DNA of 64,000 nucleotides, taken from Adineta vaga (Eukaryota; Animalia; Rotifera). The notes below the pieces were generated by a model. It was not told the DNA's origin, made no database searches, and saw nothing but the letters and a program-made list of their open reading frames with translations. The stretch lies in contig CP075492.1 of NCBI GenBank assembly GCA_021613535.1, positions 4,092,001-4,156,000 on the forward strand, given 5' to 3'. Numbering within the stretch: the first letter of the stretch is position 1; each line of letters starts with the position of its first letter. A program made the position numbers and the translations under genes. This document shows, in pieces, positions 4,897 through 49,029 of this stretch.

Positions 4897-5546
4897 CGCG
4901 TGTTTTTTTTCCTTCTTTTTGTATCAAATGAACAGAAAAAAAGAGAGAATTATTTAATTGATTAAATTAATAAGAGAAAATTCTGCTGAAGAAAAGCAAA
5001 ATTGCCTCAACATCTGATAAAACGTGGGTATGCTTAGCCTTTTTCAGTGTACAAATTTTTACAAAGATTCTATTTCAGAAATGATAAAGAGAAAATAACA
5101 ACAGGAAATATAAGAATATGAGGCATACCTATTGTCAGTTTCGTTATTTTTGTTCTTTTAAGTTCGGATTATTAATAAAGATTAGAATAAAAATAATTTT
5201 AATAATTGATAGAGTTCAATATCGTCGTTATTCTATCATTAAATGATCTAAGATGATGTTCGTTTTATATTTGAGATATTTGATTCAAAATAACAAGCGC
5301 GATTGAATCAGAAATGATAAAAAAAGATGTGAAAATAGAATTTAATTTTCGATTCTGATATCTAAGATTTGAAAAAAAAGAACGAATCAAAAGTGGTTAT
5401 GAATGATGACCTTATCGTTACTAATATAGGCAATATGTTCATTGAAATTGTGTTATGTGTTGTTAAGATCAAACCATGCCCTCTGTTGAATGGTTAAATT
5501 AGAAAAAAAGAAACGAAAGGAAGGCAAAATGCAAACGGCATAGCAG

Positions 5547-5570
5547 ATTGGTTGTTTCTAACGAACCAAC
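5547..5570. promoter_or_regulatory. Inverted CCAAT-type dyad ATTGG-N14-CCAAC upstream of eRF3
   Basis: About 145 nt upstream of the ATG. The same spacing occurs at 10277, 36491, 46025 and 51608. Confidence 0.55.
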
Positions 5571-5713
5571 AAATGTCTTTGAGTGAATCATTGCAATTCT
5601 TACAATCGTTTGTTTCTTTCGCAAGTAAATAAAATATTTCACTTCTTTCGTAACAAATACATTTAAATACAGTACGACCAATCCGGAAAAATTCGAAAGA
5701 AAATATTTTAATA

Positions 5714-8153
5714 ATGGCCGAACCTCCAGCTAGTTGGGATCAACAAGACGATGAAAATTCAGCTTTAGCAGCAGCTGCATTAAAATTCGGTGGTTTAAAT
5801 GTGAATGCAATGGAATTTGTACCAACGTTTGGTTCTGGATTTTCATCTGCTCCAAAACCAGCACCTGTCCCTCAATCTGCAGTTCCAAAAACTCCGCCAT
5901 CGACACCGGTTATATCGCAACATACGACTACTACCAATATTCCTGAAGATAAAAAGGAACAAACTGAACCGGTAATCAAAACAAATGAATTAAATGTTCA
6001 ACAACAACAACAAGTGAAACCACCAGTAACGACTGCAGGAGAAATATATTTTGACGATACTTCTAAAGACGATAGTGAAAGTGAGTTATTATTATATCAT
6101 TATGAATACATGCGTATATTGGTGCGAATAATTTTCTAGGAGTACTTGATGACATAACAACAGGTACGACAGCAGCTAACAAACCGGGTACACCTACAAC
6201 CTCAGCAGTTCCAAAAGAAAAGAAAAATGTTGTTGTTAAACGAGATATTATACGAAAGAAAGAACCGATCAACATTGTTTTCTGTGGTCATGTCGATGCT
6301 GGTAAATCAACTATCGGTGGTCAACTCATGTAATATTTATTCATGTTTGGATATTGAAAAATATTCTACCTTGAAATTTTATTCTAGGTATCTGACAGGT
6401 CAAGTTGATCAGCGAACTTTGGATAAATATCAAGCTGAAGCTCGTGAAAAATCTCGTGAATCTTGGTATTTATCATGGGCATTAGATACAAATGATGAAG
6501 AGAGAGAAAAAGGAAAAACAGTTGAAGTTGGTCGAGCTTGGTTTGAAACTGAAAAGAAGCATTTCATTATTCTTGATGCACCTGGTCATAAATGTTTCGT
6601 ACCAAATATGATTGGAGGAGCAGCTCAATCTGATATTGCTATTCTTGTATGTAAATCTTTCTTTTAGTTTTAATCATTTGTAGTGTAATCATCCTTTCTT
6701 TTTATAGGTCATTTCAGCACGAAAAGGTGAATTTGAAACTGGTTTCGAACGTGGTGGACAAACACGTGAACATGCTATGTTAGTTAAAACTGCTGGTGTT
6801 CGTTATTTAGTTGTTCTTATCAATAAAATGGATGATCCGACTGTCAATTGGGAACAAGCAAGATATGATGAAATCAAAGATAAATTAATACCTTATCTCA
6901 AAAAATGTGGTTTCAAACCTGGTGAAGATACTATCTTTATGCCATGTAGTGGAATGAGTGGAGCTTTTCTCAAAGAACATCCAGGTGAACAACTTGTACC
7001 CTGGTATAAGTGAGTATATAGTGACACAGATGAAAGAAGATTAAATACATGGAAACATTTGTATGCTTGTAGAGGACCAACATTTATTGAATATTTGGAT
7101 AATTTACCATCATTTAATCGAAGTATTGATGGACCATTTCGTATGCCTATTGTCGAAAGATACAAAGTATGTTTGTATTTCTCACTGATCAATGATAGAA
7201 AAAATCATTGAATGTATCTTTTTGAAAAGGAAATGGGTGTGATTGTAATGGGTAAAATTGAATCTGGATGCTGTCGAGTTGGTGATCGATGTATCGTAAT
7301 GCCCAATCGAACTAAAGTTGAAGTAACAAATATCTATTATGAAGAAATTGAAACCGATTCGTGTGTGTGTGGAGAGAATGTTCGATTAAAATTAAAGAAT
7401 ATTGAAGAAGAAGTTCGTATTCTTTTTTTTGTCTTTTGATTAGATGAAATGATTTTTGAAATTTGATTTTGTAGGAAATCTCACTTGGATTTATCTTATG
7501 CGATGCTCAACAAGAACCATGTGGTGTTGGAAAAGTCTTCGATGCACAAGTAAATATCTTTGACAAACATGACGAACAGCGTTTCGAAGCTTTACTAGTT
7601 AACTTCTGTAAAGTGAAAGTTAATTGTTTGTGAGATATCGATCGGGAAAAGGACTAGAATGTATGACTAGTTGTTAATCTTTGATTATGTCCCTATGTTC
7701 TCAGATATCTTGCAACTCATTGGAAATATTTGAGCAATAAATAATCATTCAAAACAAATGTGAGTCTGAATGATCATAGAGAACCTCTAAGCCATGTATA
7801 TAAATATACGGCACAAAGTATATGTTTATTGTTTAATATAGGTTGCTATTCTTGAACACAAATCAATCATATGTCCTGGTTATACTGCTATTCTTCATAT
7901 TCATGCTGCAGCTGTTGAAGTTCAATTAAAAAAATTGATCACTTTAGTTGACCGAAAAACAGGTGAAAGAACTCAAGAACATCCTCGTTTCATCAAACAA
8001 GACCAAGTCGGTATTGCTAGATTTGAATTAGTTCAATCAGGTCAAGCAATTTGTATGGAACCATTTAAACGATTTCCTCAACTTGGTCGATTCACTTTAC
8101 GTGACGAAGGTCGAACCGTTGCTGTTGGCAAAGTTCTGAAAATAGTCGAGTAA
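5714..8153 (+). CDS. GSPT1: Eukaryotic peptide chain release factor 3 (eRF3/GSPT), intact, about 8 exons
   Basis: PAM2 motif LNVNAMEFVP; GTPase motifs GHVDAGKS, DAPGH and NKMD; C-terminal GRFTLRDEGRTVAVGKV. Confidence 0.95.
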
Positions 8154-8351
8154 AAACATTCTTTTATTTATTGTTATTTCATATTTATATTCTTTCTGAA
8201 GACAAAGAGAAAAAAAACCTTACTATCGATAAAATTTTTGTTATGCATCTGATTTTGAGAAGAACATCAAATAAAAACAATTTTGAAAAAAAACAAACGA
8301 TATTTTGTTTTCTTGTGTTTGCAGAGTTTTGTTCTATCTTTCTCTCTTTCT

Positions 8352-8990
8352 GATGTTATTTTCACGTTTATTAGTTCCACGAATAAAACTGAATGTTGTT
8401 TGTCGATTGAAGTCCATAGATAGAAACTTACTTGATGAATTAGTTTGAATCAAATCCAAATCATTGCAAATGAATCCAAGATACAAAGTGATTGTAAAAT
8501 AAATCATATGTTGATTATTCTCTTATTTTTCCTGTGATATTATTTGATAAATTCTCTTGTTATCTGTTATCGTGGAAAGATCGCAATCATAAACAACAAC
8601 AACATCGAGTTCATGTTAAACCTCGTCTAACAACACAAATTGTGGTTGTAAATGAGTTTTCTTGAAGAAAGAAAGAAAGAAAAAACAAATAAAATTTGTT
8701 CTCTATAGGATATTGAAAGTGTTTGTAGTCTTGATTTTACTTCATCACACATCAACTGATCAATTGTCAATACAACTACAGAAGATAAAAATCATTATCA
8801 AGTTAAGCAATGGAATTCATGTGAGGTTGATCTTCATGGAAGATATAATTTCATCAAAACATTCAGTCAAGTTTCTTCTATATATTGTCAATTCTTCGTG
8901 TGGTAACCCTGATTCTCTTTTAGTTATCTGAAAATTTATCCACAGTTCCATTGAATGACGCTGATGTTCTTCTTGTTGAACACACAACAT
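8352..8990 (+). pseudogene. Degenerate TEFM copy A
   Basis: Homologous to 11810-12530. In-frame TGA near 8446, internal deletion, truncated near 8990. Confidence 0.8.
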
Positions 8991-9168
8991 ATTGTTATTT
9001 AAATCCCTACTTTGCTCTAATAGAGAAATGGAACAGTACGATAGGCAAGTACAAAAAAAAACCGAATACAAAGATGAAGAAGTGCGAGAAAAAACAGCAC
9101 CAAGAATAAGTGAAACAAAAACAACAGCAAAAAGAGAAATAAACAATGGGTGTTGCATATTAGAAATG

Positions 9169-10044
9169 TTAATTTTTTTGATTTTCTTCAGGCTTTTTGA
9201 GATATTTGTATATTAGATCACGCTCTTTAATGGCAATATCACGTTCGTGTTTCATCAAATGATATTGTTCTGTTATTCGTGCAATTTCAAGTTTTAACGT
9301 ATTTCGCTGCATCCTCTCGACTTTTAGTTTAAGCTCAAACATTTCTATCATTTCTGTTGGTGTCATTTTGCTATGTAAAACCATTTTTTCATGTTTACTA
9401 TCTGTCGACTAAAAGAGGAGCAAAGGAATTAAAAAATGAATTGATGTGCAAAATTTTCATAAATTGCAAGTTGCCTTGTTTGAATAAGCTAATTTACGAT
9501 TTGCACATGAATCCATTGTATTCTGAAAATGAGAGTGACATAAACGTTGATATATACGTTAATCCAGAGAGAGAGAGAGAAAAAAAAAGAAAACTATCGC
9601 TTTCTCGTCGAAAATGTTGACTGTTTGATGCTTTCCGTTCATCCTGTCTAGTCGAACATTGAGTTGCTGCAGAATCTTCGTACACACGAAAACTAGTCAT
9701 TGAAAACTTTTTTGGGATAGTTTGGATAAGAATTATTATATGATTTAGTTTTGTCTTCACTGGTGCCATGTGGTTCATTGATAAGATGTTTTTCCTTTTC
9801 AGATGAATTTGTATCATCATGATTCAACGTCTTTGATGAGAGTATACTTGTTGAACTTCCTCATCAACACTACGGTTAACGGATATTGACATCTGATGGT
9901 ACAAGTCGTTGTGGGCTTCACTATCGCTGCCTGAAATATCATTCTACAATCTGACTTTTATATAGAATTTAACATACTAGAAATCAGTGCAAGAGCAGTG
10001 ATAGCGTTTGTCGCTTCTTGAGCTGCCTTTCTATTATTTTTCAT
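9169..10044 (-). pseudogene. Possible spliced gene or remnant of an unknown coiled-coil protein
   Basis: The last exon encodes a heptad-like stretch (EMFELKLKVERMQRNTLKLEIARITEQYHLMKHERD). Upstream exon-like segments have splice sites but contain a frameshift or stop. Confidence 0.3.
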
Positions 10045-10229
10045 AACTAAAAAGTATCCGAAAATGAAAAAATGTATATCTTAAATCTTACAGATTTTTG
10101 CTTCATTAAAATATTTTCGAGAAAATATCATTGATTTTAAAGGAATGAGCATTTTTCTTTATTTGTATTTTTTAAATTTTCATTGAATCAATTCTTTTAG
10201 ACTATATAATGACCTCTTTTGAACAACTA

Positions 10230-11615
10230 AATTAGAACAGAAAGAAAGGAAAGGCAGAGTACGAATGATGCAACAGATTGGTCGTTTTCAATAAACCAAC
10301 AAGTGTGGTCAAATGAATCATCTAAAATATTACAATAGTATGTTCCTTTCGTTTCTTTCACAAGTAAATATTTCACGTTTTTCAAAAGAAATACACTTAT
10401 ATAAAGAGAAACTAAGCTGAAAAACAGGAACATCCAGCTAATTGGGATCAACAAGAAGTTGAAAATTCTACATTATCATCAACTACATTCAAATTAAGTG
10501 GATTAAATGTGAATACAGTGAAGTTTGTATCATCGTTTGGTCAGTTTCAAAAACTCCACGTTCGACACGAGTTGTATCTCAACACACAACAACGACAACC
10601 ACTACTGAAGATAAAAATCAACAGATAGTAACTAATGCAAGTGAAAGATACCTTCGAAATATTTGCAGCGATGATAGTGGAGAGTAAGTTACTTTCCATT
10701 GTCTAGATATGCATATGTTTATCATTACAAATATCCAGAAGTATTCGAAGATGGAACAAAAACCATGACAACAGCGAATAAAACTGGTACACCAAGTGTT
10801 TCAGCAGCTCCAAAAGAAAAGAAAAACATTGTTATTAAACAAGATATTATGCGAAAGAAAGAACCACTTAATATTATCTTTTGTGGTCATGTCGATGCTG
10901 GAAAATCAAAAATCGGTGGTCAACTTGTATCTTCGTATAAGTAAGTATATTCATTTATGATATTCTATTCAACATACATAAATCATTTTTGTTATTGTAC
11001 AGGACCAATATTTATTGAATATTTGGATGGTTTACCATCATTTAATCGAAGTATTCATGGTCCACTTCGCATGTCTATTATCGAAAGATATAAGGTATGC
11101 TTATTGATTCAACTTTTTGAAAAGATAAATGATCGATAATAAAAACTATGTTTGTTTTCATTAAAAAAAGGAAATGGGCGATTGAAATTAAAGAATGTTG
11201 AAGAAGAAGCTCGTATCCATTCTTATCAATACATTGAATTACTTTTGTAGAAAATCTCACCTGGATTTATCTTATGTGATGCTGCACAAAGAAATATCGA
11301 GAGAACGATAATTGTGAATGAACTCATATGAAGTAAAAGATAGTTATTTTGAAAATATTGATTGAGAAGAAGATTAGACTATTTTCTGATATATCATTCA
11401 TGAAAAGAAGTACTTGAGTATTGAATAATCATCATGGATAAACATACATGTTTTTTTTTGGTTGTTTCATGTAGGTTGCTATCATTGAACACAAATCAAT
11501 CATATGTCCTGTTCAATTTTAAAAATTAATCACATTAGTTGATCGAAAGACAGGTGATAGAACTCAAGAACATCCACGTTTCATCAAACAAGATCAAGCA
11601 ATTTGTATGGAAATG
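10230..11615 (+). pseudogene. Degenerate eRF3 copy, including its upstream region
   Basis: Remnants PANWDQQ, KEPLNIIFCGHVDAGKS, GPIFIEYLD and EHKSIICP. Start codon lost and several large deletions. Confidence 0.9.
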
Positions 11616-11809
11616 TTCTTTTATTTATTGTTATTTCATATTTATATTCTTTCTGAAGACAAAGAAAAAGAAATCTTATAATTGATAAGATTTTTGTTAT
11701 GCATCTGATTCTAAGAAGAACATCAAATAAAACAATATTCAAAAAAAACTAAACTCATTTTGTTTTCTTGTGTTTGTAGATTGTTTTTTTCCTCATCCTT
11801 TTCTCTCGA

Positions 11810-12898
11810 ATGTTATTTTCACGTTTATTAGTTCCACGAGTAAAACTGAATGTTGTTTGTCGGTTAAAGTCCATAGATAGAAACTTAGTTGTTGAATTAA
11901 ATCAAATCAAATCCAAAGATCTTTTGAAAATATTCAATGAACAACAAACAAAAGATTTTCTTCAATTGAGAAGGTCTCTAGGTGGTAAATTTCAATCATT
12001 GCAACAATTTCAAAATGAATCCAAGATACAAATTGACTGTAAAATAAATCATACGTTGTTTATTCTTTTTATCTTTCATATGATTTTAGTTGATAAATTT
12101 TGTGGTTATTTGTTAACGTTAAAAGATCGAAATGATAAGCAACAACATCGAATTCATATCGAACCTCGTCTAACATCACAACTTGCCGCCGTAAATGAGT
12201 TTTGTCCATGAAAGAACAAATCGAATTGGTTCTCTCTAGGATATTGAAAGTGTCTGTAGTGTCGATTATACATCATCGCATATCAATTGGGCAATTGTCA
12301 CTACAACAACACAAAATAATAATCATTTTCAAGTCAACCAATGGAATTCGTTAGAAATTGATATTTCTCGAAGATACAGTTTCATCAAAACATTCAATCA
12401 AGTTAGTTCTACATATTGTATTTGTTATCATTGTTTTAAATTGAAACGTTTTTCTTTTAGTTATCCGAAAGTCTTTCAACCGTTCCATTGAATGATGCCA
12501 ATGTTCTTCTCGTTGAACAAACAACATATCGTTATCCAAATATTAAATTAGCAACTTATGTCTCTCAAATACAACAAATTCGTGCTATACTCAATACCAT
12601 ACTTCATTGTCAATTGCTAACTAAACGTCCGATTTATCATATATCAGGAAGAGATGTAGCAACACGTTTTGGTTTATTTATTGGCAATGAACAGTCGAGT
12701 GCTGAGTTTTTTCTGACGAATCTGATATTTAATAATATCAATGACAAACAAATGATATCAATGGATATTGATCATCAACTGAAAACGAATTATCATGAAT
12801 CAACGAAAGGACAACGAGAACCAATGGCCCAATGTTTGTTGAGAGCATTAGCTTTTCTTCAATCTGTAAATCAGAAAAAAGCTGAATCTCCTAAGTAA
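11810..12898 (+). CDS. TEFM: Mitochondrial transcription elongation factor TEFM-like, intact copy B, 4 exons
   Basis: Basic presequence, HhH-like segment (RRSLGGKFQSLQQF), pseudo-RNase H fold with VATRFGLFIGNEQSS and REPMAQCLLRALAF. Confidence 0.75.
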
Positions 12899-14073
12899 AA
12901 AATAAATCTGTATTCGAAAAAATTCTTTTTTAATTAATTGTCTGTACTGAATCGATGATGTAAAAGAAATTCGAAGTTTATATCTTGAGGGGGTTTTAGT
13001 ATTGATGGTGGTGATATCGATGACTGGCAAGGTCGAAGCCAGATGTTGTAGTATTTTTAATAATGCGTGCTGTTGTCGCAACAAAGCCGGACAGCAAGTT
13101 CGTGTCGGGATAAATATAATTAACGCTTAACAACTTCAACCGAATGGAGGAACTTGTGAAGGATGTGAAATTGGCTGGAAATGCTGAAAACATACTTTTT
13201 ATACGAATAAATCTTAAGACTTCTTTCAAATATTTTTCCACTTGCTTGAAGAAAAAGTTGTTTATAGAAATTGAAATCTTTTTGTTACATAGTTATACCG
13301 GAATATTCTTTTTCGTTCATTTATGATTGAATAAAAATCCGGTGTATTTCTTCATAAACTAAGTTCATAAACGATGATAATTATTTGTCATTTATCATAT
13401 TCAAATTGAGAATAAGTATGTCTTCTATTTGCCATCTCTCTCGCTATATATATATATTGATTTCTTCTATTAGTTAAACATTATACTTGAAGTAACCTTA
13501 TAATCTATAAACCAAGTATAGATATGGAATACTCGTAGTCGAAATATAAGACGAAAAGATATTTCTAGAACTTTTCTATTGAATAGAATTCTAAGAAAAA
13601 GGTCGAAGGTATTTTTCAGTCGATTAATATTTTTGTCCTGATAGTTTATACCAAAGGCAATCTTATGAAGCTTTTAATATTAATTTCTTCCAGATACTCA
13701 ATTTCGCATAATTATATTCTAATTTTATGAGAAACACTTTAAAAAAGCATATTCAATGCTAAAAATACTATAATCTGTACTTGAAAAAGTCCGTACTTCT
13801 TCATTCTAATTATGTGACGCATAAATAATAATATGTACAAACCTCAAAGCTAAAGGGTTTATGTCCAATGGAAATGCACTGGAATTCTAATGAGAATTTA
13901 ATTTTAATGATTATAATATAATAAAATCTTTATTTTAAAAAGAAAAAAAATCCTCAATCAAATGATATCAAATAACAATTTATTTTGTTAAGATATATAG
14001 GCATAGATACGACTTCTTCTTCTTATCTTATTCTCTTCTCTACGAACTTTTTCATTCAATTAAACATATAAAG

Positions 14074-14489
14074 CAGAGATGGGCAAGTCAAGTCATTTTT
14101 GACTTGAAACAAGTCAAGTCAAGTCCAAGTCTGACTTGACTTGACTTGACTTGACTTGAGTAATACTATGACTTGACTTGACTTGGGCTTTCCCCTGTAG
14201 GTCAAATTACAAGTCAACCACGGAAAACCGATCTAATTATGTGTGTCATTCATCTGTTAGATAAATTATGCATAACTGCCAGCTTAGTCAGATTTCGTAG
14301 CTACTTTTCGACCTAATTTATGTTACAATTAGGTCAAAAAGCACGTGACTTAGGAAGCATTACGACTTGACTTGACTTGGGAAGCATTGCGACTTGACTC
14401 GACTTGACTTGGAAATTTTTTTGATAGCTATTGACTTGACTTGACTTGACTTAGGTTTTTGTGTCAGTAACTTGACTTGCCCATCTCTG
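14074..14489. mobile_element. Non-autonomous hAT-type MITE, 416 bp
   Basis: Perfect 20-bp TIR CAGAGATGGGCAAGTCAAGT. Perfect 8-bp TSD ATATAAAG at 14066-14073 and 14490-14497. Internal arrays of GACTT/AAGTC pentamers. Confidence 0.95.
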
Positions 14490-14675
14490 ATATAAAGTAC
14501 GATCGGTATAAAATAAGTACTTTTATTTCCTGACCTCTATTTTGTTCGAATAATACATTCGATTAAAATAAAGACTTCGCAATTTTATTTGTTATTTCTT
14601 TTTCATTCTTTATTCTAACATACATATATAAATAGTGGACTTATTTCGATTAGAAAAACATTAAATTGATTTCAA

Positions 14676-15964
14676 ATGAATCGATTCTTTGCTATTATTT
14701 TCTTGACTATTTCATTATCTATTATTGGAATAGTTAATTGTAAATCAAAATATGTTTATTCTTTATTGGAATCGACATCCCGAACAACAAGACCATCAGG
14801 AGAGATTTCATCGGTAACATCAAATGAATTACCAATTCTTAAAGGTCTTTCGATGCGATATGTTTCAATAACGTCATCAAGTATTCGAGAACCACATTGG
14901 CATGCAAATGCTGATGAATTAGGTTATTGTTTAGTAAGTTTCTTTCTTTTTCTGAAAAGAAAGGTTTTTCTTATTTGAAATTGTTTCATTATATAGAATG
15001 GTTCAGCTTTAATAACAATTTATGGAAATCATAATGAACATGATACATTTATTATTAATGAAGGTGAAATGTATTTTGTTCCATCTGGTTATTTACATCA
15101 TATTGAAAATTTTGATGATTCAATTACAGCTGAATTTATTGTTACTTTTACAAATGAATTACCTGAAGATTTTGGTTTATCAAGTACATTTTATGCTATG
15201 TATGTTTATCTTTTTTATTTTTATTAAAAATAATCTAAAAAAATATATTTTGTAGGACAAATGCTGTTCTTGGAAATACATTTCAATTACCAAGTAATGC
15301 ATTTGAAAGCATTGAACGTCGTAAGGTAGCAACAGTATTTGGATTTAAGAATAATTCAATGAATAATGAAATTCAACCTGAATTTAAATATCCAAATCAA
15401 TATAAATTTAATGCTGAAGGTTTATCAGCTAAATTAATGAATAATGAAGGAATTGTTAAAACAATAACAAAAAATGTTTGGCCTATATTAAAAGATGGTA
15501 AATTTAAATTAGAAAAACATAAGAAAATAATTTTGATTTTTTTTTCTTTCTTTTTAGTATCAATGTATTCTCTTCGAATCTCAACAATTGGTATGCGTGA
15601 ACCACATTGGCATCCAACAACAGCTGAAATGGGTTACGTTATTGAAGGTAATGCTCGAATGACAGTTCTTTCTCCTGGTGATGAACAACGGTTAGAAACA
15701 TATACACTTAAAAAAGGTGATATGTATTTTATTCCACGTGCATATCCTCATCATATTGAAAATATTGGAAATATAACAACTCGATTTCTTGTTTTCTTTG
15801 ATCAACCTATACCTGGTGACATTGGTTTAACAGGAAGTTTCTCAGCTTATTCCCGTGAAACAATTGCTGCTACATTACAATGTTCAATTAAAGATTTACC
15901 TCAATATCCATTTTATCCAGAAAGTTTATTGATTGTTAAACGAATTAATCCGATTGATCCATAA
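14676..15964 (+). CDS. Secreted oxalate-decarboxylase-like bicupin, probable HGT; exons 14676-14933, 14997-15199, 15256-15497, about 15558-15964
   Basis: Signal peptide and two cupin metal motifs, REPHWHANADE...LHHIEN and REPHWHPTTAE...PHHIEN. Confidence 0.85.
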
Positions 15965-16664
15965 TATCGAACAGAATGATCATGAACATCGATTTTTTTT
16001 CTTTGAAAAGTTCATATTACATAATAAATTTAAACATATTTTTAAAATAAACACATATTTATTTAAAAAATTTCGACAAATGATTGGTTTTGCATCTCAA
16101 AGACAACCATTATCAAACAGATTATTTTACCTCATTTGTTACCATGAAAGGTCCATTTAATTGATAAAATATCTACTGAAACTACTTTTGAAATTTTATT
16201 TTATTTTGTTTTCTATAAAAAGATCAAGTCATGTCTTCTTTTGTATAGTAAACTACGTTCTGATTTCACATTTTCCATTGTTCGCAACACAATTGAATTC
16301 ATTTCTTTTAAACAAAGATAATACAGATACTGTTGGAAAAGATACGTGAAAGGATTTATGTTCTTCAATACTTTATTCGAATATATAGATAGTGAAGACG
16401 TAATGTTTCTAATAGTAACATCGTGCAGTTCATTCATTTTTAGGTCAAATTTTTGCTAAAATTGGTCACGAATCAAGACAGCTGAGACAGTTACTGCAAG
16501 ATCATGATCATGATGGTAATTAGTTTTATATATAAATAAGTACTAACTATAATGGACTTTTTAGGCTTAGATCAAATCCATTTTGGTTCTTTGAAAGAAA
16601 TATTTTATTGTTTACAAAGAAAAGAAAATGATGATTATCCGGTAAGACTGATCGATAAAAAAAC

Positions 16665-17510
16665 ATTAATATGAAAAAAGAAATGAACTTTCTCCTCATA
16701 TTCATTTTTTCTGACGTCGTCCGCTAGAGAAACATGAGAAAAAAAGTGAACTCAGACTAATACCATCCGCTATTAATGTCATTTCAAGTTGTGTGCGCAA
16801 AGAAAAGGATATATATATATTGTACTCGAGATTCGTTATCACTCATTGGACAAACAATTATTAAGATAATATAATGACAGAAATAATTATGGTAAGATAA
16901 CGATATTGCTAATAGATTTGACTTACGAGAAACTTATGATTCTCCATTAATATTACGTGAGTCTTATTATTATCTATAACACGAGCGATTCTTCTGTTTG
17001 ATTTTCATTCTTTTTTTACGAAAACCTTTGTTTTTAGGATGATGACGAACTTTCTGGTCGCGCAGCAGCATTTATACAAGAAATGATTAATATGAAAAAA
17101 GAAATGAACTTTCTCCTCATACTCATTTTTTCTGACGTCGTCCGCTAGAGAAACATGAGAAAAAAAGTGAACTCAGACTAATACCGTTCGCTATTAATGT
17201 CATTTCAAGTTGTGTGCGCAAAGAAAAGGATATATATATATATTGTACTCGAGATTCGTTATCACTCATCGGACAAACAATCATTAAGATAATATAATGG
17301 CAGAAATAATTATGGTAAGATAACGATATTGCAAATAGATTTGACTTACGAGAAACTTATGATCCTCCATGAATATTACGTGAGTCTTAGTATTATCTAT
17401 AACAAGAGCGATTCTTCTATTTGACTTTCATTCTTTTTTTACGAAACCTTTTTTTTTAGGATGATGACGAACTTTCTGGTCGCGCAGCAGCATTTACACA
17501 AGAAATGATT
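16665..17510. repeat. Tandem direct duplication of a unit of about 422 bp
   Basis: 16665-17086 and 17087-17510 are near-identical; both begin ATTAATATGAAAAAAGAAATGAAC. Confidence 0.95.
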
Positions 17511-17600
17511 AAAATGGCTGAAAATGGCGTATTGGTCACACCCGAGATCATGAAGAATATCCTCGAGAAATTTGGGATTAAAAAAGAATATTTTGGTTAA
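17297..17600 (+). CDS. Putative 52-aa two-exon micro-protein (MAEIIM|DDDELSGRAAAFTQEMIKMAENGVLVTPEIMKNILEKFGIKKEYFG)
   Basis: ATG at 17297, GTAAG donor at 17315, pyrimidine-AG acceptor ending 17459, TAA at 17598-17600, AATAAA near 17650. Confidence 0.55.
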
Positions 17601-18286
17601 CTTCTCTTGTTAATAGAAGGAAGAAAATTCAATCTTTTCTCTTGATTTTAATAAAAGAAACATGATTTGATTGATTCAACAGTTGAAGAAAAATCGACAC
17701 GTCAATTTTTTTACGAGAAACGAACAGTACAATCACTGAGTTGAACATAAAATTTCTTTTCGATAACAATCAATGAGATAAACTTGATAATATTGTTATA
17801 TTTGACGAAAGCAAATCAAAGTGAAGATTTGAAAAAAGAAATAAGAGTTGTTGGAATTTAAATCTGATATAAAATCAAATTCTTATCTTATCACTCAAGA
17901 GAAATGATATAATACAATCTTTCTTGTATAAGAAAACAGTGCCATTTAAATCATATTTTTGTAGATAAATAAAGATGTGAAGTTTCTGTTAATTACTTGT
18001 CATATTTTTCAAGCACTACTGTATAGACGCACAATTGTTCGTTACTAAAAGATTGCGTTCGTTTCATACTTCGATTTACAGAAAAGAGCATGATTGAAAT
18101 TTGGTTTTAGGTATCTCTGGTTTTCTTATTGATTCAAAACCAAGCTTTGATTTAACTAATAGAACATTAGAAGAGAAACTTTTTCTACGAATTTTCCGAA
18201 GAATAATTATACATGTTAATAGAACTTATTAAACAGTTTTCATCGTCATTAAAATCATTATCTTTAGAAAAATAGCCTAATAAGAT

Positions 18287-18546
18287 AGAAACATATACTT
18301 AAAACAGGTGATATGTATTTTATTCCACGTGCATATCCTCATCATATTAAAAATATAACAACTCGATTTCTTGTTTTCTTTGATCGACTTGCACCTGGTG
18401 ATATTGGTTTAACAGGAAGTTTCTCAGCTTATTCCCGTGAAACAATTGCTGCTACATTACAATGTTCAATTAAAGATTTACCTCAATATCCATTTTATCC
18501 AGAAAGTTTATTGATTGTTAAACGAATTAATCCAATTGATCCATAA
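18287..18546 (+). pseudogene. 3' fragment copy of the bicupin gene
   Basis: Near-identical to 15692-15964 with a 9-bp deletion; no 5' exons. Confidence 0.9.
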
Positions 18547-18722
18547 AAACAAACTTTGATTATTCTTTTTTTTATTTGATAATAAATTCGGTTTAAAATA
18601 AACATTCTTTAAGTAAATAGAAAAAACTAAGAGATCGATAATTTTATGAAAAATATTTCAACAATAGATTTAAGAATTATTAGATAATTGAATATTAAAT
18701 TCAGTTCATTGAAGCAAAAAAT

Positions 18723-18860
18723 ATGCTTGAGAAATGTTCATTTGATTCGTTATCAATCGAAATTTTATTTGAAATCTTTGATTATTTATTACCAAATGAT
18801 ATTATTCATGAATCTTTTTTGTTTAAATCAACAATTCAATTATAAATTCTTTGATTAAGA
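18723..18860 (+). pseudogene. F-box-like remnant
   Basis: MLEKCSFDSLSIEILFEIFDYLLPNDII followed by a frameshift and stop. Confidence 0.45.
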
Positions 18861-19336
18861 GTATGAACAAATGATTGACTCATTTAACAGAAACAAGTTA
18901 TCATGTTATTCTCACATTACTCCATAAACTATGATCATCTTTCCTGCACATAAACAGTTTAATCTTCAAGATCTATATGATTATGTAGAATTGAACTAAT
19001 TAAAAACACTAATAGTAGTATATTAGTATGCTCTGATGGACGAATAGAAAAGAGAGTTGTTTCGTCATAAATGCGCTCGAATTTATACCTGCATTTTGTT
19101 ATTGAAGTTATATATTTATGCAAAACTTCCAGATATCTCTTGATCAGCAGGACAGAATTCAGCGCATTAACATATTTTTCTTTCTGTTATACTAATACAT
19201 GAAACAAGAATGAAACCGACAAAGTTACCAAACAAAACCTATGAATCAATTCTCCACCAATGACCATTCCAAATGCTATTCGTAGAACAATCCGCTTCAT
19301 CCATTTATTGTCAAAGTTCGATTAAGAAAAGTGATC

Positions 19337-20195
19337 ATATTTATATTCTTTCTCAAGACAAAGAGAAAAAAAACCTTACTATCGATAAAATTTTTGTTAT
19401 GCATCTGATTTTGAGAAGAACATCAAATAAAAACAATTTTGAAAAAAAACAAACGATATTTTGTTTTCTTGTGTTTGCAGAGTTTTGTTCTATCTTTCTC
19501 TCTTTCTGATGTTATTTTCACGTTTATTAGTTCCACGAATAAAACTGAATGTTGTTTGTCGATTGAAGTCCATAGATAGAAACTTACTTGATGAACTAGT
19601 TTGAATCAAATCCAAGGCCGAAATGAAGTGAAACAACATCAAATTCATATCGAACCTCGTCTAATATCATTACAGCAACACAAGACAATAATCATTTTCA
19701 AGTCAACCAATGGAATTCGTTAGAAATTGATATTTCTCGAAGATACAGTTTCATCAAAACATTCAATCAAGTTAGTTCTACATCTTCTATTTGTTATCAT
19801 TGTTTTGAATTGAAACATTTTTCTTTTAGTTATCCGAAAGTCTTTCAACCGTTCCATTGAATGATGTCAATGTTTTTCTCGTTGAACTAATAACATATCG
19901 TTATCCGAATATTAAGTTAGTAACTTATGTCTCTCAAATACAACAAATTCGTGCTATACTCAATACCATACTTCATTGTCAATTGCTAACTAAACGTCCG
20001 ATTTATCATATATCAGGAAGAGATGTAGCAACACGTTTTGGTTTATTTATTGGCAAAGAACAGTCGAGTGCTGAGTTTTTTCTGACAAATCTGATATTTA
20101 ATAATATCGATGACAAACAAATTATCATGAATCAACGAAAGGACAACGAGAACCAATGGTCCGATGTTTGTCGAGAGCATTAGCTTTTCTTCAAT
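19337..20195 (+). pseudogene. Degenerate mosaic TEFM copy C
   Basis: The 5' part matches copy A, including the TGA. The 3' part matches copy B, with deletions. Confidence 0.85.
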
Positions 20196-20836
20196 GTGTG
20201 CATTTGAAATAAAATAAATTCTTGAATATAAAGAATCAGATTATTATCTATTGTTCCATAGATTTAGCTAACGTATATTGTTTGAAAGAGACAATCTGAT
20301 GAATAATGGTTTGTATATTTTCTTTTAAGCATGTTGAATATGATAGATGAGTTTCAGCAGTGTTTATATTTGAAAAGGCAACTATAGAAATAAAAGGTCA
20401 AATCTTTCAAATCAATGAGTTATTATATTTCAATCTTCAAGGTTTCACATGGACAAGCAATCCATATAAGTAATCATGGTTATATTCTGTTTTCTTTCTT
20501 CCTTTTGTGAAAAAACGCAGAAGATTTCAATTGATATGAGAAAGAAAGATAGAAAGAGAGAAGAGAACAAGGGTATGGTCATCGTGTATGTTTTTCTGTT
20601 ATGTATCCGTCAGTTTGGATTCTGTACATATCTATATGTATGGCTAGTCGACCGTTGTAACATATATATTGTGAAAAATGGAATCGTAAAGAAACGAATA
20701 TGGCGAAGAAAAAGATGCCTTGTTCTCTATTTCTCTCTCTTTCTATCACTTTCTCTTTATATATATATATCCGACGTTAAGTTAGTGCAATTCATTACCA
20801 ACCTTTTTGTACTAAACTTATCGTTAAAAATTCATA

Positions 20837-37749: not shown

Positions 37750-38060
37750 TCTACGTATTCAAAAGCACCAGGTGGTTTTCTTGTAACATTCTTTAGTTCG
37801 GAGTCGAATGGTAATATTGAAATAAATTATGATTTGTTATCTTCAACAATTTCTTTTCCTGATTGCGTTCGTTTTTCAATTTCACGTGATAAATCACTTG
37901 GATTAATCCATGAACGAGATTCCTTCTTCAACATTCAGAACTTGTGAGCAAATACGTTCATCTTGACGATACATGAACTTACTTGACCATATTAATCAAT
38001 TGTTTAAATTCTTGTTCCAATTGTGTATAAGGTGCTGGTGGATCTTTTTGTTTTCTTTCA
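37750..38060 (-). pseudogene. Degenerate MRPS26 copy
   Basis: Deleted remnants KDPPAPYT/EQEFKQLINMV, SRSWINPSDLSREIE and RKPPGA; homologous to 62400-63052. Confidence 0.85.
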
Positions 38061-38346
38061 GTGGACTCTAAACAAAAAGACGAAATGATTAAATGTACCT
38101 TTGAAAAGAAGAAGAAAAATCTTACGAGAACAAGATTTTCAGCACGACCTTTACCACGATAAATTGGTGGAACATAAGTATGTTGAAAATCAATTGTACT
38201 ACCATTGAGTTCATAGGTTAAATATGCTTCAAACATGAAGACTTCTATCGAAAAATCAAGATGAGAAAACAAATACTTTTATCAATCGATGCTTTATTCA
38301 ATTCAATTTTGAATTCGCTGTTAGTTTTATCATGAACATCATCCAT
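38061..38346 (-). pseudogene. Truncated NATD1-like copy, joined by deletion to the MRPS26 relic
   Basis: AYLTYELNGSTIDFQHTYVPPIYRGKGRAE is retained; exon 3 is lost. Confidence 0.8.
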
Positions 38347-39336
38347 CTTCGTGATGTGACTAGTTAGTTTTTTATTCCGATAAATAACCATGGAAAATAT
38401 ATCAATCCAATGAAGGAACTATAGAGGTCACTCTTAGCGATGAATATGTTTTATATCTAACCACACGTGTATTTTGAAATTATCCTTGATTGTTACAAAA
38501 CGTCTATCTGTCTTCCTTTATTTTTTGCTTAATCGGTTTCTTTCTTTTGGCGTGGGTGTAGATAATTAGCTAGTCTTAACTCCACCACCCCCACCCTCAA
38601 AATGGGTACTATACCTGAATAGGTCAAATAATTAAAACAGTTGAGATCAACTTTCATGTTTGATACCACTGATAGGATGACGATTCTCAACAATTAATGC
38701 AAGGTCATCCCAAAATTTTTTAAATTTATAGACAGTGGTACTATCGGATGGATTCGAATCTCGACTAAAATGAGCATCTCTTTTTTAGTCTATAGATTTA
38801 TTCGTTGGACCGTACAATAATTCGATTAATCGATCAAAATGAATACAAATGTGCTTGGTGACCATTTGATACCATAACTAATGTTGATTTTAATGAAGAA
38901 TCTTCATTAATATAGAGCCACTATTAAGTGATTCATGAAAGTATCACTTTAAAGTTACTATGAGATTGGATACAGTCTCGAGAAATTCTTTCTAGATGTT
39001 TCCAACGTTGTTTTATTTTCTGCAATACATTCATAAAACTTCATTAACTTTCAAAATATTCTGTCGGCCTGAATGTGCCGAGTTTATTCATTTTAGTCAT
39101 TTTGTTAATTTTAATCAAACCTTTAGGTATAGCATTATAATACTCACGAACCGAAAAGGCCTTTTGCGTTGTAGAAGGATAAAAGTGCTTCGACGATTGC
39201 ATTTTTGATGTGCTGTTGATATAAAAAAAACTGAGAGAACGAAAAAAAACGTGTACTACATGTAAGGTAGCGTCAAGAATAGAATAGTTATTATTACGAA
39301 AAAGTAAAAATTATTTTCACTTACGTAAAACAGTCG

Positions 39337-42068: not shown

Positions 42069-43021
42069 TGCTTTTCGATATTTTATCTGTTTACATTTTC
42101 CGACGGCTTACGTTTTCTTCTCGACGTTTATCTTTTCAAGTGGTATACGATATACTTTTCCCTTTCGATATTTAACACTAAATCCTTTCATTTTCAGGTG
42201 CTGCACATGAACTAGACAATATAAATGTATGATTTTGTTCAAGATTACAAATATATATATATATCATAATTTTTTTATAGCTTGTTTCTGGCAAAATTTT
42301 AAATGGATTCGAAGTATTTGAACTTCTCAGTAAAAGTATGTTCAATTGAAATTTTAAACAGTTGAAATAACGTTGTCTTTGCGCTTTTCAGGTATGTACG
42401 CTGGTGATCGGGTTGGTGGTACTCCACTTAATGATGTTATCATCTATACAAGTGGAGAGAAATAGGTTTTTTATGTTAATAAATAATAAAAACATTCATC
42501 TTTTGTTTTATCTGCTTTCTATCAGATGATATCAAAATTTCTCTCAAGATAAATTCATAGACTAGCTTTGAGGGTATAGGGGAAGAAACGATTTAAGGAA
42601 CATTCCACTGTGATTAATCAGAAATGCACCAGACGAAGTGATTCAGTGATGTGAATAATAGTATGAGGTTGATATGAGAAACGACAATTAAGTGTTATTG
42701 TGATATGTTGAAGTAGTAAAATGATGTTTTTGTTGAAAGTAATTATATTGAATATACAGCTGAAAAACGGATATATCTAGTTTTTATTTATCACAATGAT
42801 ATGCATGATCATCTTTTCTCTATATTTTACATCAAAATATTTAACAGTATCGGAACCATATTATCATTGTAGTTAATTCTATTGAAGAAGCCAAGATGAT
42901 TTGTCGTTGGCCTTTTAAAGTTTTAGGCAAAATTCATTGCAAAACAAACATAAATTTTTACTTTAAGACCGAAGTATGATATACATTTAGATAAAAAAAA
43001 AGAATTTTGGTCAAAAAATAG

Positions 43022-43094
43022 TGCCCCGGGTGAGGATCGAACTCACGACCTTCAGATTATGAGACTGACGCTCTACCGACTGAGCCACCGCGGC
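43022..43094 (-). tRNA. tRNA-Met(CAT), elongator type
   Basis: Exact reverse complement of 54893-54965; followed by a T-run terminator. Confidence 0.95.
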
Positions 43095-43306
43095 GGCGAT
43101 TTGTTATTGCATAATGTTCAACTCTGACAAGTTCGATTCCTTTGAATATTTTCAACTTTGTACATTGTCATCTACATCAAATCACATTCATTCGACTAAC
43201 AAAACAAAATAACATCGGTGATTCTATTACAGCATTTCTTTCCTATATATTATTTGAACATCACACAAGAAAATGTATACAAAAAAATAACTTTTCTTTA
43301 TAACAG

Positions 43307-45888
43307 TTAATACATATCATCTTCATCATCACCTTGATTATCTGCATCCACATTTTTGATCTTTTCTTGTCGTCGATAAAGATCAGCAACTTGTTCTGCA
43401 CTTGTTGCATCTTCAATTGATTTATCTTCTCGTTCACGAAGAAATCGAGGAAAACGAAGTGAAATACCTTTTCCTTCATCAACCTAGTTCATCCAAAAGA
43501 AAAATAAACAATATTTTTCCTTAAAATATCTTTATTTACTTACAAGACCAATAGCTGCATGATGGTTAGGTGATAAAGATAAATCAGCACATTTGACTTC
43601 CCACACTTTTGCAGCATCAAACCAAACATCCGGTATTAAAGATGAAGAATATCGATAATATGCAAGTGGTTTAGGAATAATATGTGGTTCCAATGATTTA
43701 CCCAATGATACAAGTAATTCGTCAGTAAAACCAGTACCCAACTATTCGAGAAAACAAAACATATTCATTTCATAATACTTCAATAAGAGAAGAAAAAAAA
43801 CTTACTTTACAAATACATTGATATTCTTCATTATCTTTATCGTAACATGCCAATAGATATCCACCATAAACACCAGTTCGTTTACCTGTGCCAGTATAAC
43901 CACCAATAACAACAAGATCGAGTGTGTCTCCAACACCATCAAGATAATCTTTTTTCAACTAAACAAAAAAAACAAAGCACTATTTTCTTTGAAAATAAAG
44001 TTCATCAATTACTTTGAGCCATTTATGTGATCGTTTAGCAATTTCATAAGTAGCATCATCATCTAATGTTTTAACCATCAAACCTTCACAACCATCTTTA
44101 ACTGATTGTTCCAAATACATATTGATTTCATCAATATTTGATGTTGTACGTGATTCAGCAAAAACAAGTTCACCAGGTATACAACGAAGTGATTCATGTA
44201 AAAGACGACGACGTTCACGAAATGGTTTTTCAACCAACGATTCACCATTTAAATACAAAAGATCAAATGCAAATATACACACTAAACAATATAATCTATA
44301 TTGAAAATTTACTGTTTTACAAAAAGAGAACAAACCTTGAAGTTTAATTTCTTTAATATCTGCATCCTAAGTTCGAACAATGTTTGTATAAATATCAATT
44401 TTAATTGGCAAAAAAAGAAAACATCATAAGCAACACATTCTCCATCTAATATTAATGATTTGACTTGCGGTTGAAATGCATTCGGTATTCGTTCAATAAC
44501 ATCAGGATATTTCGATGTATTATTTTCTGAATTTCTCGAATAAATATAAACTTTCTTATCTTCCGTTAAATGTATCTAAAAACAATATTTAGAACGAGGT
44601 TAACAATTGAATCAACATACTTGTGCACGTTCACCATCATATTTATATTCACAAGCAAATTCACTTTGTCCACAACGTTTTAATATTTCATCAATACCTT
44701 TCGATGGATGTGCTAACATGGGTTTCTTGAGATTGACAAGAAACAAGAAGACTTTTGATAATATCACCTTTACGTTGTTGACTCTGAAGAAAAAGTATTT
44801 ATTTTCTGAAAGATCGAATAAAATTTTTACTTTGTTGCCTGTTAATTGAGCAATTTCTTTTAATTTTTTATAAACATGTGACACCGTTAATGGTTTAGGT
44901 TTAAACATCGTACGTTGTGTTGAACGAGAGGCCTGCAAAGAATTCAACAATTTCAAGAGATTGTCTTTCTTTTATAGATTTACCTCAGCGACCAAACCTA
45001 AATCACCTTTTGATTTATAATCAGCTTTTACTTGTTCAGCCGTACGACCTGTACTATCAGCAATTGCTTTGATAATAATGGTTTCACCAATACCTAATTC
45101 AATGCCTTCGTATTCTGGTGCGACTTTATTAACACATAAATAAACACTATATACTAAATCATTAGGTGATAAACTTCGAACTGAACGAAAGAAATTTGAT
45201 AAAATACGAATAATTTCTAAACGAGCTGAAGTTTCTTCAATTAATAATAACGTCGCTGATAAAGCACCATATGTATGGAACACTGAAATACACAAATTAT
45301 TGTAACTATTTAGTATTTTTCTACAATTAAATTTTACTTTTCACCGAGTTTCCAACATGCATCATTGATTGGATCATAATTTGTTTTACCGGGATTATAT
45401 GATTGTGGATCAGCAACACTGAAAATAAAGATTTGCTTTGTGATTAATCTTCTTGAATGAAGATTAAATTACCTTTTCTGTTCAATGGAAACAATTGTTG
45501 TTGGTCCAATTTTCGGCACTATCGTTTGTTCTTCATCTTTTACTTCGACTTTTGTATCGATAATTTTCATTTGTTTAACAACTTTAGTCGGTGTTTCTCC
45601 AAGATTTTCTGTTGATGAACTACTTTCATCAAAACTTAATACACGTTTTCTAGCACGTTTTGTTGGAATAATTCGATCTTCTGAAACGGACGATGGAGAA
45701 ACAATTGGTTCTTTATTTTTAACAGTAATTGGAGACGCAATCGTTTCTTTTTTTTTTCGATGATATCACAGATGATTGATCCTTTTTTTGTAAAAACCGA
45801 CCTAAGAATATGTCATTAAATACTAGTTAAATAGAAACAATTTTTCATACGCAATCGATGATTGACTGATTTTCTTGGAATTATTCAT
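43307..45888 (-). pseudogene. Inverted degenerate DNA ligase I copy
   Basis: KYDGERAQ is retained, but there is a 5' frameshift, a deletion of about 275 bp near 44730 and a disrupted segment near 44400. Confidence 0.9.
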
Positions 45889-46504
45889 TTTTATCTTCTT
45901 TATACGTGAAGATAAATATCTCAAATGATGTTCATTATGATTATGAAATAAAATTTGAACAAAGCGAAAAGAGAAACAATGTTTCAAAGACATCGGAAAG
46001 TACATACACGAATATGAATGAATTATTGGTATATTATGAACAACCAATAACAAATATCGTTCGAATTTTTTTGAGAGGCACCATATGAGTGAAGAGAAGT
46101 ACAAAATCGTTATGTTCTAAAGCGTTTATGGTAATAAAATGGAATGATATGTTCAAATCAAGTGAAGAAGATATTATACTATCAAATTTTAATATCATAT
46201 TAAGTTCAAAAAGCAATGTCATGTATCATTGAATGATGCAAATCTTTCTTATAGTTGTATGTAATCAAGGAGATTTTTTTTCTCGTTTTATACTTCATCA
46301 ACCGTAGCTAAGTTTTTATTTACAAAGAAAAAACTCAAGTATGAACAGGAAAAACAATAATAACAATTAGATGATCTTCATGTAAAAGAAGAAAAACAAA
46401 ATGATCGTTCTATTATAATATAAGTTATGCTTTAAAACTGATAAATATATATATATATCCATTAAAGTTAAAAATCACCCTCAAAATTCAAATAAAAAGT
46501 TCAT

Positions 46505-47950
46505 TTATTTATTTTCTTCCCAACCAAATTGACTCATGGATATGGGAAGACTAAGAGATTCTTTTCCAATTTCAGTTGTTTTTGTTACACAACATAATTG
46601 TCCTTTGAATTCTGGTAGATAAGTTGCACCAGATAAGGGACATTTCACTAATGGATTTCTACTAAAATAAACGAATATTTGAGATAAAAATCTAATAGAT
46701 ACAAAATTCATACCGATAGATAGGTACATAGGATGCAGCACAAATATCAAATGGATTATATTCATCATAATTCAATGGTTGTTCATCAATTCGATTCTTT
46801 TCACAGACACTTAATACTTTTCGTGTCTAAAAACAAGAGAGTGAAAATGATATGAGAATGAAGTGAATTCTAATACGAACCTGTTGAGCAACATCAGGTG
46901 TTGGTCCTAATTCCAAGAGACGTTTAGCAAAACTTGCTGCTATTTTATAATTTTTCATTTTAAATGCTTGATTCAATGCAGATTTTAATGCCATGATTTT
47001 GTGTACAGGTTGTAATTGTAAATGAGTAAAATATGCAGCTAATTCACACGAACGCTTCTCATCATTTTTTGCTAAATCTTTCTTTGCCATTGACATTTGT
47101 AATCCAACAATATATTCTTTACATATTTCGATCAGTTGTTGACTTTCAAGAATCCCTTGTTGCGATTCGAGAACAAGTAATGGTAGAGATAATAGAATGG
47201 AATGAAAGTGATCAATAGCTTCTTGAAATTTACCATTTGTTGTTAGACGGTAAGCGACTTGAAGACGTGCAACTAATCCTTCTAATTTCAAACCAATAGC
47301 AGGAAAGAATAGTTTTGGTGAATGTGCATCACGCCTTAAATAAAAAAAAGATTATTTATTGAATAAAACATAAAGAGAAAGAAATAACTGACCAATTTCT
47401 TAATGGATATGCATATAATGCTGGTAATGATGGTAATGCTGTAAAAGCTGTACGTGATCGTGAATAAATTTGGAGAAATATTTGTTTATATTCTTCAAAG
47501 TTGACAATACCAGCGTGATCATGTAATAAACGCATTGCTGATTCAAATGAACCACTTACGACATGATCAACAGCTAATTTCGAATTTTGTGACCAATATT
47601 GTGGAACAGAATGACCTTTAGCTGGTGCAACAAACTAGCCACTACCATTATCTTCATCTCTAGTACCACCTGCATCACTAGATTCTTTCTAAAACGAAAT
47701 AGAAAGTTTTCTTGAAAGAAAAAATATCTTATAGAAAAGAATCACTTACTAGATCAATTGATGAATCAAGGTCTGTATTACTACAACCTTCAGCATGATC
47801 ATGTTCATTGGTATTGATATTTTTTCGTCGAATATCAGCATAATCTTCAGCTTCACCTGCTGCTTCCTGAAAGGAATTAGGAAGTTTTCTTGAAAAAGAA
47901 AATATCCAGAGAAATAAATCACTTACAAGATCGAATGGTGAAAACAACGA
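46505..47950 (-). pseudogene. Coatomer alpha (COPA) C-terminal fragment with introns and an in-frame TAG at 47635-47637
   Basis: AGSFESAMRLLHD-like segment (VSGSFESAMRLLHD), [33 protein letters not shown]. No N-terminal WD40 region in the window. Confidence 0.85.
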
Positions 47951-48860: not shown

Positions 48861-49029
48861 GATTTCTGAAAAATATTACATTAATGAAATCGTTAATATT
48901 ACTACTGCACAGTTCAGTGCAAAAGCGACAAAAACAAACAACAGTTCATATCGTCTGTACGTTTGAAAAAACACTCTTTGTAGTCATTTTAGCGTATTCT
49001 TATGATTCTATATTATCATTTGAATTATT

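Follow-up and report, generated by a model that had tools for sequence, protein, structure and literature searches.

Tandem duplication and reciprocal decay of an old eRF3-TEFM gene pair in Adineta vaga, a bdelloid rotifer

In a 64,000-nt stretch of the genome of the bdelloid rotifer Adineta vaga (C3:4092001-4156000, hereafter the window; the assembly comprises six contigs and 100.8 Mb), a gene for the translation termination GTPase eRF3 has a gene for the mitochondrial transcription elongation factor TEFM behind it on the same strand, and this pair is present in two tandem copies with complementary fates. In copy 1, eRF3 is intact and TEFM is dead, while in copy 2, eRF3 is dead and TEFM is intact. 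Thus, the colinear blocks and the lesions described below bear out the tandem duplication with reciprocal loss that had been proposed in an earlier note on this DNA, and the copies are the product of one duplication with complementary inactivations. In all bdelloids compared, the two genes lie next to each other, and eRF3 followed by TEFM is a same-strand bdelloid unit that is both old and closely linked. The explanation that we regard as probable on balance combines this old unit, its tandem duplication in A. vaga, the reciprocal decay of the copies and an operon-type expression of TEFM. The features concerned are as follows.

5476-5713, plus strand: live eRF3 promoter, with GAAGGCA (5520), the dyad ATTGGT..AACCAAC (5547-5570), TGAATCAT (5584) and a TATA-like element (5662).
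5714-8153, plus strand: eRF3 (GSPT-type) copy 1, intact; exons 1-4 at 5714-6080, 6140-6329, 6388-6646 and 6708-7009, exons 5-8 at 7073-7166, 7230-7412, 7475-7549 and 7842-8153.
8154-8352, plus strand: 3' untranslated region (3'UTR) of eRF3 copy 1 and intercistronic module, with conserved blocks, AATAAA (8270-8275) and an acceptor ending at 8324, from cross-species alignment.
8353-9004, plus strand: TEFM copy 1, dead.
9005-10208, no strand assigned: spacer between the copies, unique in the genome and without a match in A. steineri.
10209-10425, plus strand: eRF3 promoter relic of copy 2, with AAAGGCA (10250), the dyad (10277-10300), TGAATCAT (10314) and TATATAAA (10398).
10426-11615, plus strand: eRF3 copy 2, dead, with parts of exons 1 and 2, the end of exon 4, and parts of exons 5 to 8.
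11616-11809, plus strand: intercistronic module of copy 2, with conserved blocks, AATAAA (11726-11731) and the acceptor TGTTTGTAG ending at 11779.
11810-12898, plus strand: TEFM copy 2, the only intact TEFM of the genome, with four exons (11810-12038, 12090-12190, 12240-12401 and 12461-12898) and 309 open codons.
19335-20221, plus strand: TEFM copy 3, a dead mosaic absent from the earlier note, followed by the ancestral downstream neighbours.

The tandem copies extend over 5476-9004 and 10209-12898, and a blastn self-comparison (window positions 5000-10000 against 10001-14000) aligns them in 10 colinear blocks of 68-92% identity, given here in copy-1 coordinates, or in those of both copies.

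5476-5833/10209-10541: 68% identity.
5880-5961.
6025-6326: 73%.
6984-7174: 78%.
7377-7513.
7829-7878: 92%.
7920-8007: 90%.
8042-8060.
8159-8460/11616-11917: 87%.
8468-9004/12013-12541: 78%.

The gene of copy 1 is identified as eRF3/GSPT by its EF-Tu-type GTPase and eEF1A-like C-terminal domains. In this AT-rich genome (GC content about 30%, introns of about 50-60 nt), its eight GT-AG exons, with the end of exon 3 placed at a GTATGT donor, join to one open frame of 593 codons. Domain searches were carried out with single exons, which were joined solely for frame checks and for the ratio of nonsynonymous to synonymous change (dN/dS), and they returned GTP_EFTU (PF00009, 8e-18), PF22594 (7e-20) and PF03143 (1e-10), with GTP-eEF1A_C domains, as well as a weak N-terminal match to PAM2 (PF07145, E=0.0012, 18.8 bits against a cutoff of 20). 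Exon by exon, identity to the A. steineri gene is 84-93%, except for exons 1 and 2, with only 52% and 75%. The eRF3 of copy 2 has lost its ATG region and 657 nt spanning exons 3-4; in exon 6, a deletion of 202 nt shifts the frame and thereby brings in a stop. Mutations have removed two splice donors, and three pieces of exon 8 are missing, the stop codon among them. In a tree of eRF3 pieces, the branch of this copy is about six times as long as that of the live one. A second eRF3 paralogue is located on the same chromosome, 10.4 Mb away (C3:14532500-14534450, loci L014/L015). Its exons 2 and 4-7 are 76-85% identical, its exon 1 is shorter, and its exon-3 match contains two stops; neither TEFM nor the conserved 3'UTR blocks are found behind it.

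Across the genome, exon 4 finds an intact match in TEFM copy 2 only, and the dN/dS of this copy is 0.25 in comparison with A. steineri and 0.23 with R. sordida; as the sole intact copy, with a dN/dS of about 0.25, it is judged functional. TEFM copy 1, in turn, is interrupted at codon 32 by a TGA (8446-8448), and 88 nt have been deleted from its exon 1. The acceptor of intron 1 is lost, exon 3 contains another TGA, and the gene is truncated at 9004. Copy 3 matches copy 1 at 99% over its first 280 nt, the same TGA included, and copy 2 at 94-95% in its 3' half, and it has three large deletions. This last copy carries the annotated A. vaga protein I4U23_011880 (156 aa, 19260-20221), the first exon of which lies upstream of the TEFM homology, and the annotation is probably a spurious model on a pseudogene.

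The downstream gene is recognised as TEFM, a protein with a helix-hairpin-helix N-domain and an RNase H-like C-domain, through a chain of homology that extends over nearly its full length. The TEFM exons found no match in Pfam or in direct PDB searches, and a profile built from bdelloid sequences only was also blank. A word search retrieved bdelloid relatives, two of them named TEFM by UniRef. The A. steineri orthologue (P0023) matched, in a representative library, proteins of 320-360 residues that include P0043 and P0045, over residues 20-304 with a library-wide E of about 1e-7; P0043 and P0045 reached the human TEFM structures 9mna/5ol8 with 4e-40 and 2e-22, and a joint profile reached the human structures with 5e-60. 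A structure search was abandoned, the AlphaFold model being too poor (pLDDT, the predicted local distance difference test, of 53), and the sequence P0020, considered as a spliced transcript, was rejected, since it is genomic DNA.

The antiquity of the pair is evident from 11 bdelloid loci in which eRF3 is followed by TEFM on the same strand, with a gap of 144-247 nt between stop and ATG; in copy 1 this gap is 199 nt, in agreement with the distance of about 200 nt previously noted. The loci come from A. steineri (L018), R. sordida (L019), one Logan run-assembly contig (L025), assembly or metagenome contigs of ENA (L026, L027 and L028) and metagenome contigs of JGI (L031, L032, L034, L035 and L037); L024, L043 and L044 were left out of the comparison. 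In A. steineri, a PDZ gene is followed directly by a single intact eRF3 and then a single intact TEFM, with the downstream neighbours that in A. vaga stand behind TEFM copy 3, and the array is colinear with the window on both sides. Exact look-ups of window open reading frames among public contigs (two look-ups) were blank.

The intercistronic region has a fixed order: the eRF3 stop, two or three blocks kept between Adineta and Rotaria, AATAAA, a pyrimidine tract with a CAG or TAG acceptor, and the TEFM ATG. The acceptor ends 34-54 nt past AATAAA in the five units measured, the same layout being visible in the others, and the ATG follows 0-50 nt past the acceptor. In copy 2, TGTTTGTAG does end at 11779, where it had been placed before, 31 nt ahead of the ATG at 11810. 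Cleavage normally takes place 15-20 nt past the poly(A) signal. Taking these distances into account, there is no room for a separate promoter between the 3' end of eRF3 and the TEFM acceptor. For bdelloids, one spliced leader is known and no dedicated SL2, and a search for the spliced-leader exon followed by a GT donor gave 58 genome matches, versus 0 for the reversed control; a junction pattern of spliced leader to TEFM was found in none of the metagenome contigs. Since the linkage is conserved and the layout is fixed, the unit looks like a spliced-leader operon, and its anatomy and conservation make it likely that the ancestral eRF3-TEFM unit was an operon.

The eRF3 3'UTR blocks (GTTGTTATTTCATATTTAT, TTTTGTTATGCATCTGATT and GAGAAGAACATCAATAAA, at 8160-8275 and 11616-11731) are also found in L018, L019, L027, L031, L032, L034 and L035, and they are far better conserved across bdelloid families than synonymous sites. 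Candidate roles are the coupling of 3'-end formation to trans-splicing, control of the eRF3 mRNA, or a TEFM promoter.

Relics of the unit are not restricted to A. vaga. In R. sordida, an eRF3 relic follows TEFM in one locus (L019), and another (L017) contains a TEFM with a frameshift, a relic of eRF3, a piece of the PDZ gene, an eRF3 in which exon 1 is missing and a TEFM that has lost its start. In the metagenome locus L034, an intact TEFM is preceded by eRF3 exon 8 and the 3'UTR only, the 5' half of eRF3 and its promoter abut in the opposite orientation, and a second eRF3 without exon 3 follows. These cases indicate that the unit is prone to duplication, and the last one that TEFM can persist, at least for a short time, where no eRF3 promoter points in its direction. 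The second eRF3 copies that stand behind TEFM in Rotaria and in one metagenome bdelloid (L019:12459-13629, L017:2163-3671, L034:2939-3843 and the protein P0026) have GTPase exon 3 missing or degenerate; in P0026, the degenerate GTPase stretch remains an open frame.

Given that duplications abound in this region, and that copies 1 and 3 have a 99% identical stretch in common, it might be thought that the copies are collapsed or misjoined haplotypes instead of real tandem paralogues. Such an assembly artefact is very improbable. Copies 1 and 2 differ by 10-30% and each has its own large deletions, probable DNA runs of other studies contain 0.73-0.74 of the words of 10200-12900, and similar relic arrays appear in R. 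sordida and in metagenome contigs.

There are 68 shared-derived states that unite copies 1 and 2, versus 29 and 29 for the alternative groupings with A. steineri and R. sordida, and in the tree of eRF3 pieces every relic groups with the live eRF3 from the genome to which it belongs. For these reasons, the duplication arose in the A. vaga lineage, unless the copies were homogenised; the single intact pair of A. steineri likewise points to an event specific to that lineage. Three-point distances, calculated by hand, give about 19-20% change in the dead exons on the branch of eRF3 copy 2 versus 5-6% on the live copy, and about 12% change for TEFM copy 1 versus 9% for copy 2. It seems from the latter figures that TEFM copy 1 was alive for much of its time.

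One tract (7829-8460/11462-11917) is much less diverged than the remainder, with 9 private changes at 235 sites versus 86 at 576 elsewhere (p=2e-6). The well-preserved 350 nt before TEFM copy 2 were considered as a proximal promoter, and this was set aside in favour of gene conversion. Gene conversion is preferred because the tract extends into the dead TEFM copy 1, whose exon 1 it includes, because copies 1 and 3 are 99% identical there, and because live eRF3 genes have no extra synonymous constraint, either in exon 8 or in the pieces kept in copy 2. Thus, a conversion at about a quarter of the duplication's age fits the tract better; it is not proven, since the variable sites are not clearly more alike within the tract (39/55 versus 168/256).

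The data give the following history, which is solid, as is the structure of the locus. After the split from A. steineri, the unit was duplicated in tandem in the A. vaga lineage. The eRF3 of copy 2 decayed over its whole branch at about three times the rate of the live copy, and the TEFM of copy 1 seems to have been under some constraint for a time before dying, which left TEFM copy 2 as the sole working one. A further duplication or gene conversion generated the third, mosaic fragment and the younger tract. The unit is envisaged as a two-gene spliced-leader operon, the transcript of which would read past the poly(A) signal of eRF3, so that addition of the spliced leader at the conserved acceptor (11779/11780 in copy 2) would release the TEFM mRNA. 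In copy 2, the upstream cistron would now be a non-coding transcribed leader.

The question of what drives TEFM copy 2 leads to the promoter of eRF3. In bdelloids, this promoter has a common skeleton, consisting of GAAGGCA at about -194, the dyad at -167, TGA(A/G)TCAT at -130 and a TATA-like element at -50, and the motifs of the live A. vaga promoter are found with the same spacing upstream of eRF3 in A. steineri, R. sordida and two further loci (L026 and L027), the dyad of L026 being a perfect inverted pair of CCAAT boxes. The relic of copy 2 has lost the 5'UTR and the ATG, and all four motifs are still recognisable in it, spaced as in the live promoters. The dyad (ATTGG-N14-CCAAC) is situated exactly where it had been reported, occurring just twice in the window (5547-5570 and 10277-10300) when 0.03 occurrences would be expected by chance.

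The proposal that the old promoter is being kept, and that its region would have diverged less than the neighbouring dead sequence, was examined by counting private changes at sites that have the same letter in A. steineri and R. sordida. The copy-2 promoter has 18 such changes at 113 sites, a proportion like that of the dead gene body (86/576, p=0.77), versus 6/113 in the live promoter of copy 1 (p=0.016), and 6 of the 37 columns that are invariant in five live promoters have been lost in copy 2, which is the neutral expectation. Purifying selection on the relic promoter was not found, and there is no detectable sign that selection preserves the old promoter in its entirety. What stands of the reported conservation is the retention of the core motifs at their spacing: the dyad, TGAATCAT and the TATA-like element have 1 change in 28 positions (one-sided p=0.049), for motifs picked by eye and post hoc. 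An intact TEFM frame in copy 2 implies that expression was needed throughout, and hence that a required promoter should show some constraint. If many of the conserved sites served regulation specific to eRF3, this test loses power. The possibility that the dyad owes its retention to a minus-strand gene of the spacer, for which it would act as a bidirectional promoter, was discarded, since no such conserved gene was found; the minus-strand open reading frames of 9005-10208 have no paralogue, no homologue and no Pfam match.

It has been considered that the old eRF3 promoter drives copy 2, with a start near 10400-10430, in which case the 1.36 kb of dead eRF3 would be an outron, discarded upon spliced-leader addition at 11779/11780. 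This is possible, although we regard it as less likely than not. Besides the spared core at its conserved spacing, which is the nearest promoter-like sequence on the same strand, it would be the parsimonious continuation of an operon, and it meets the need of an intact TEFM frame to have been expressed throughout. The relic has no transposon insertions, and AATAAA is not enriched in it (2 observed versus 2.9 expected, a count uninformative in itself). In addition, runs guessed to be RNA, their type being only a guess, contain 0.48-0.55 of the sampled words of 10200-12900, above the shares expected for the TEFM exons alone (about 0.31) or the whole TEFM unit (about 0.41), with 0.74 at most in probable DNA runs; taking the guessed run type into account, these shares hint that part of the relic is present in RNA. 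On the other hand, the pre-set test of the old promoter found no constraint, the 5'UTR region of copy 2 has been deleted, and the upstream block of the ERICH2 parallel, described below, is the least conserved of its pair.

Alternatively, TEFM might have a promoter of its own, within the remnant of the last eRF3 exon or the 3'UTR blocks, making it an overlapping independent gene or part of a hybrid operon, and leaving the upstream relic as junk. This is a serious possibility, for which our confidence is a little below even. The identity of the 3'UTR blocks between Adineta and Rotaria is well above that of third codon positions (about 0.6), no such blocks follow the eRF3 paralogue at C3:14.53 Mb, which is itself without TEFM, the old promoter decays neutrally, and in L034 an intact TEFM has only exon 8 and the 3'UTR upstream, the 5' half and promoter of eRF3 being reversed. 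However, with the acceptor so close to AATAAA, any such start would have to be upstream of the poly(A) signal, exon 8 is without extra synonymous constraint, and the blocks may merely regulate the eRF3 mRNA. Furthermore, the L034 event looks recent, as exon 8 is still open, and, coming from a metagenome assembly, it proves little.

Thus, as to the position of the start, the TEFM transcript of copy 2 might begin at the surviving core of the old eRF3 promoter, at about 10400-10425, which we regard as possible, short of probable; a start nearer TEFM, in the relic or in the conserved 3'UTR blocks, appears about as likely or somewhat more so. Several points weigh against the explanation as a whole: a duplication specific to the lineage could be simulated by concerted evolution; the old promoter changes in the manner of dead sequence and may be inert; the low divergence just upstream of TEFM copy 2 is better explained by gene conversion; and an internal promoter fits equally well, yet nothing positively marks one.

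The window contains a possible parallel. ERICH2 had been described as lying behind two dead genes whose upstream region persists. Scraps of such genes are there: the minus-strand open reading frame 37979-38272 is a scrap of NATD1 (PF14542) fused to scraps of MRPS26, a gene that is intact in the other copy (62690-63052). The upstream block said to persist (38062-38548) is the least similar of the duplicate pair, at 68% versus 76-100%, in a comparison without an outgroup. The NATD1-MRPS26-ERICH2 cluster resembles eRF3-TEFM in being operon-like and locally duplicated, with the working genes split between the copies, and differs from it in that its duplication is inverted and not tandem. The general claim that operons are dismantled by duplication draws on these two cases from one window. 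In its full form, with a pseudogenised first cistron kept only as a transcribed conduit, or outron, and with duplication and reciprocal decay as a general route dismantling rotifer operons in which the downstream gene never needs a promoter of its own, we find it doubtful on this sequence evidence.

With regard to the surroundings, the edge of the A. vaga duplication (5463-5476/10209) and the independent inversion breakpoint of L034 (L034:1133-1157) both lie about 25 nt or less from the distal boundary of the conserved promoter of eRF3, just upstream of a TGCC(C/A)TCT(G)TTG motif. Chromosome 3 is unusually rich in duplications around the window, where other young ones are a 440-nt tandem repeat (95%, 16657-17516), an inverted 3-kb pair (42971-46106 versus 55020-51549, 89-97% identical) and a direct 630-nt pair (46569-47198 versus 49018-49647, 99.4% identical). 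The block 12900-19334, which has no match at the syntenic place of A. steineri, includes a two-cupin gene (14676-15964) with a signal-peptide-like start (Cupin_1 at 7e-20 and 1e-7), and a partial copy of this gene, 92% identical, lies 2.6 kb downstream (18286-18554).

The eRF3-TEFM unit can be compared with the SL2-type operons of C. elegans, including the hybrid ones with internal promoters, in which the genes are also on the same strand, with an acceptor shortly past the upstream poly(A) signal. In both, linkage has been kept through heavy genome rearrangement. Unlike the SL2 system, the bdelloid case involves a single leader sequence, the one searched here with 58 matches, and eRF3-TEFM is a putative operon. 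It has been argued that downstream genes of operons lack promoters, so that break-up is selected against (PMC1657053), and operons had not been reported in rotifers according to a methods paper of 2021 (PMC7986045). The fate of the copies also recalls reciprocal loss of the duplication-degeneration-complementation type, where two copies of one duplication each lack a different function; as each copy has lost a different function, both loci must be kept. Here, in contrast, what has been partitioned are whole cistrons of an operon-like unit and not subfunctions of one gene, and a further eRF3 paralogue exists at C3:14.53 Mb, which also sets it apart from a plain case of this type. If transcribed, the eRF3 relic would be removed at spliced-leader addition in the same way as the outrons of trans-spliced genes; our literature search found no description of an outron made from a pseudogenised upstream cistron, and the idea stands here as a hypothesis only.

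Operons are considered difficult to take apart, since their downstream genes have no promoter of their own, and this locus constitutes a natural experiment on that idea, in which an essential-looking downstream gene, the sole intact TEFM, has outlived its upstream partner. Conserved across bdelloid families, eRF3-TEFM adds a well-defined candidate to the search for rotifer operons, and the repeated duplication and decay of the unit in several species provides replicate cases.

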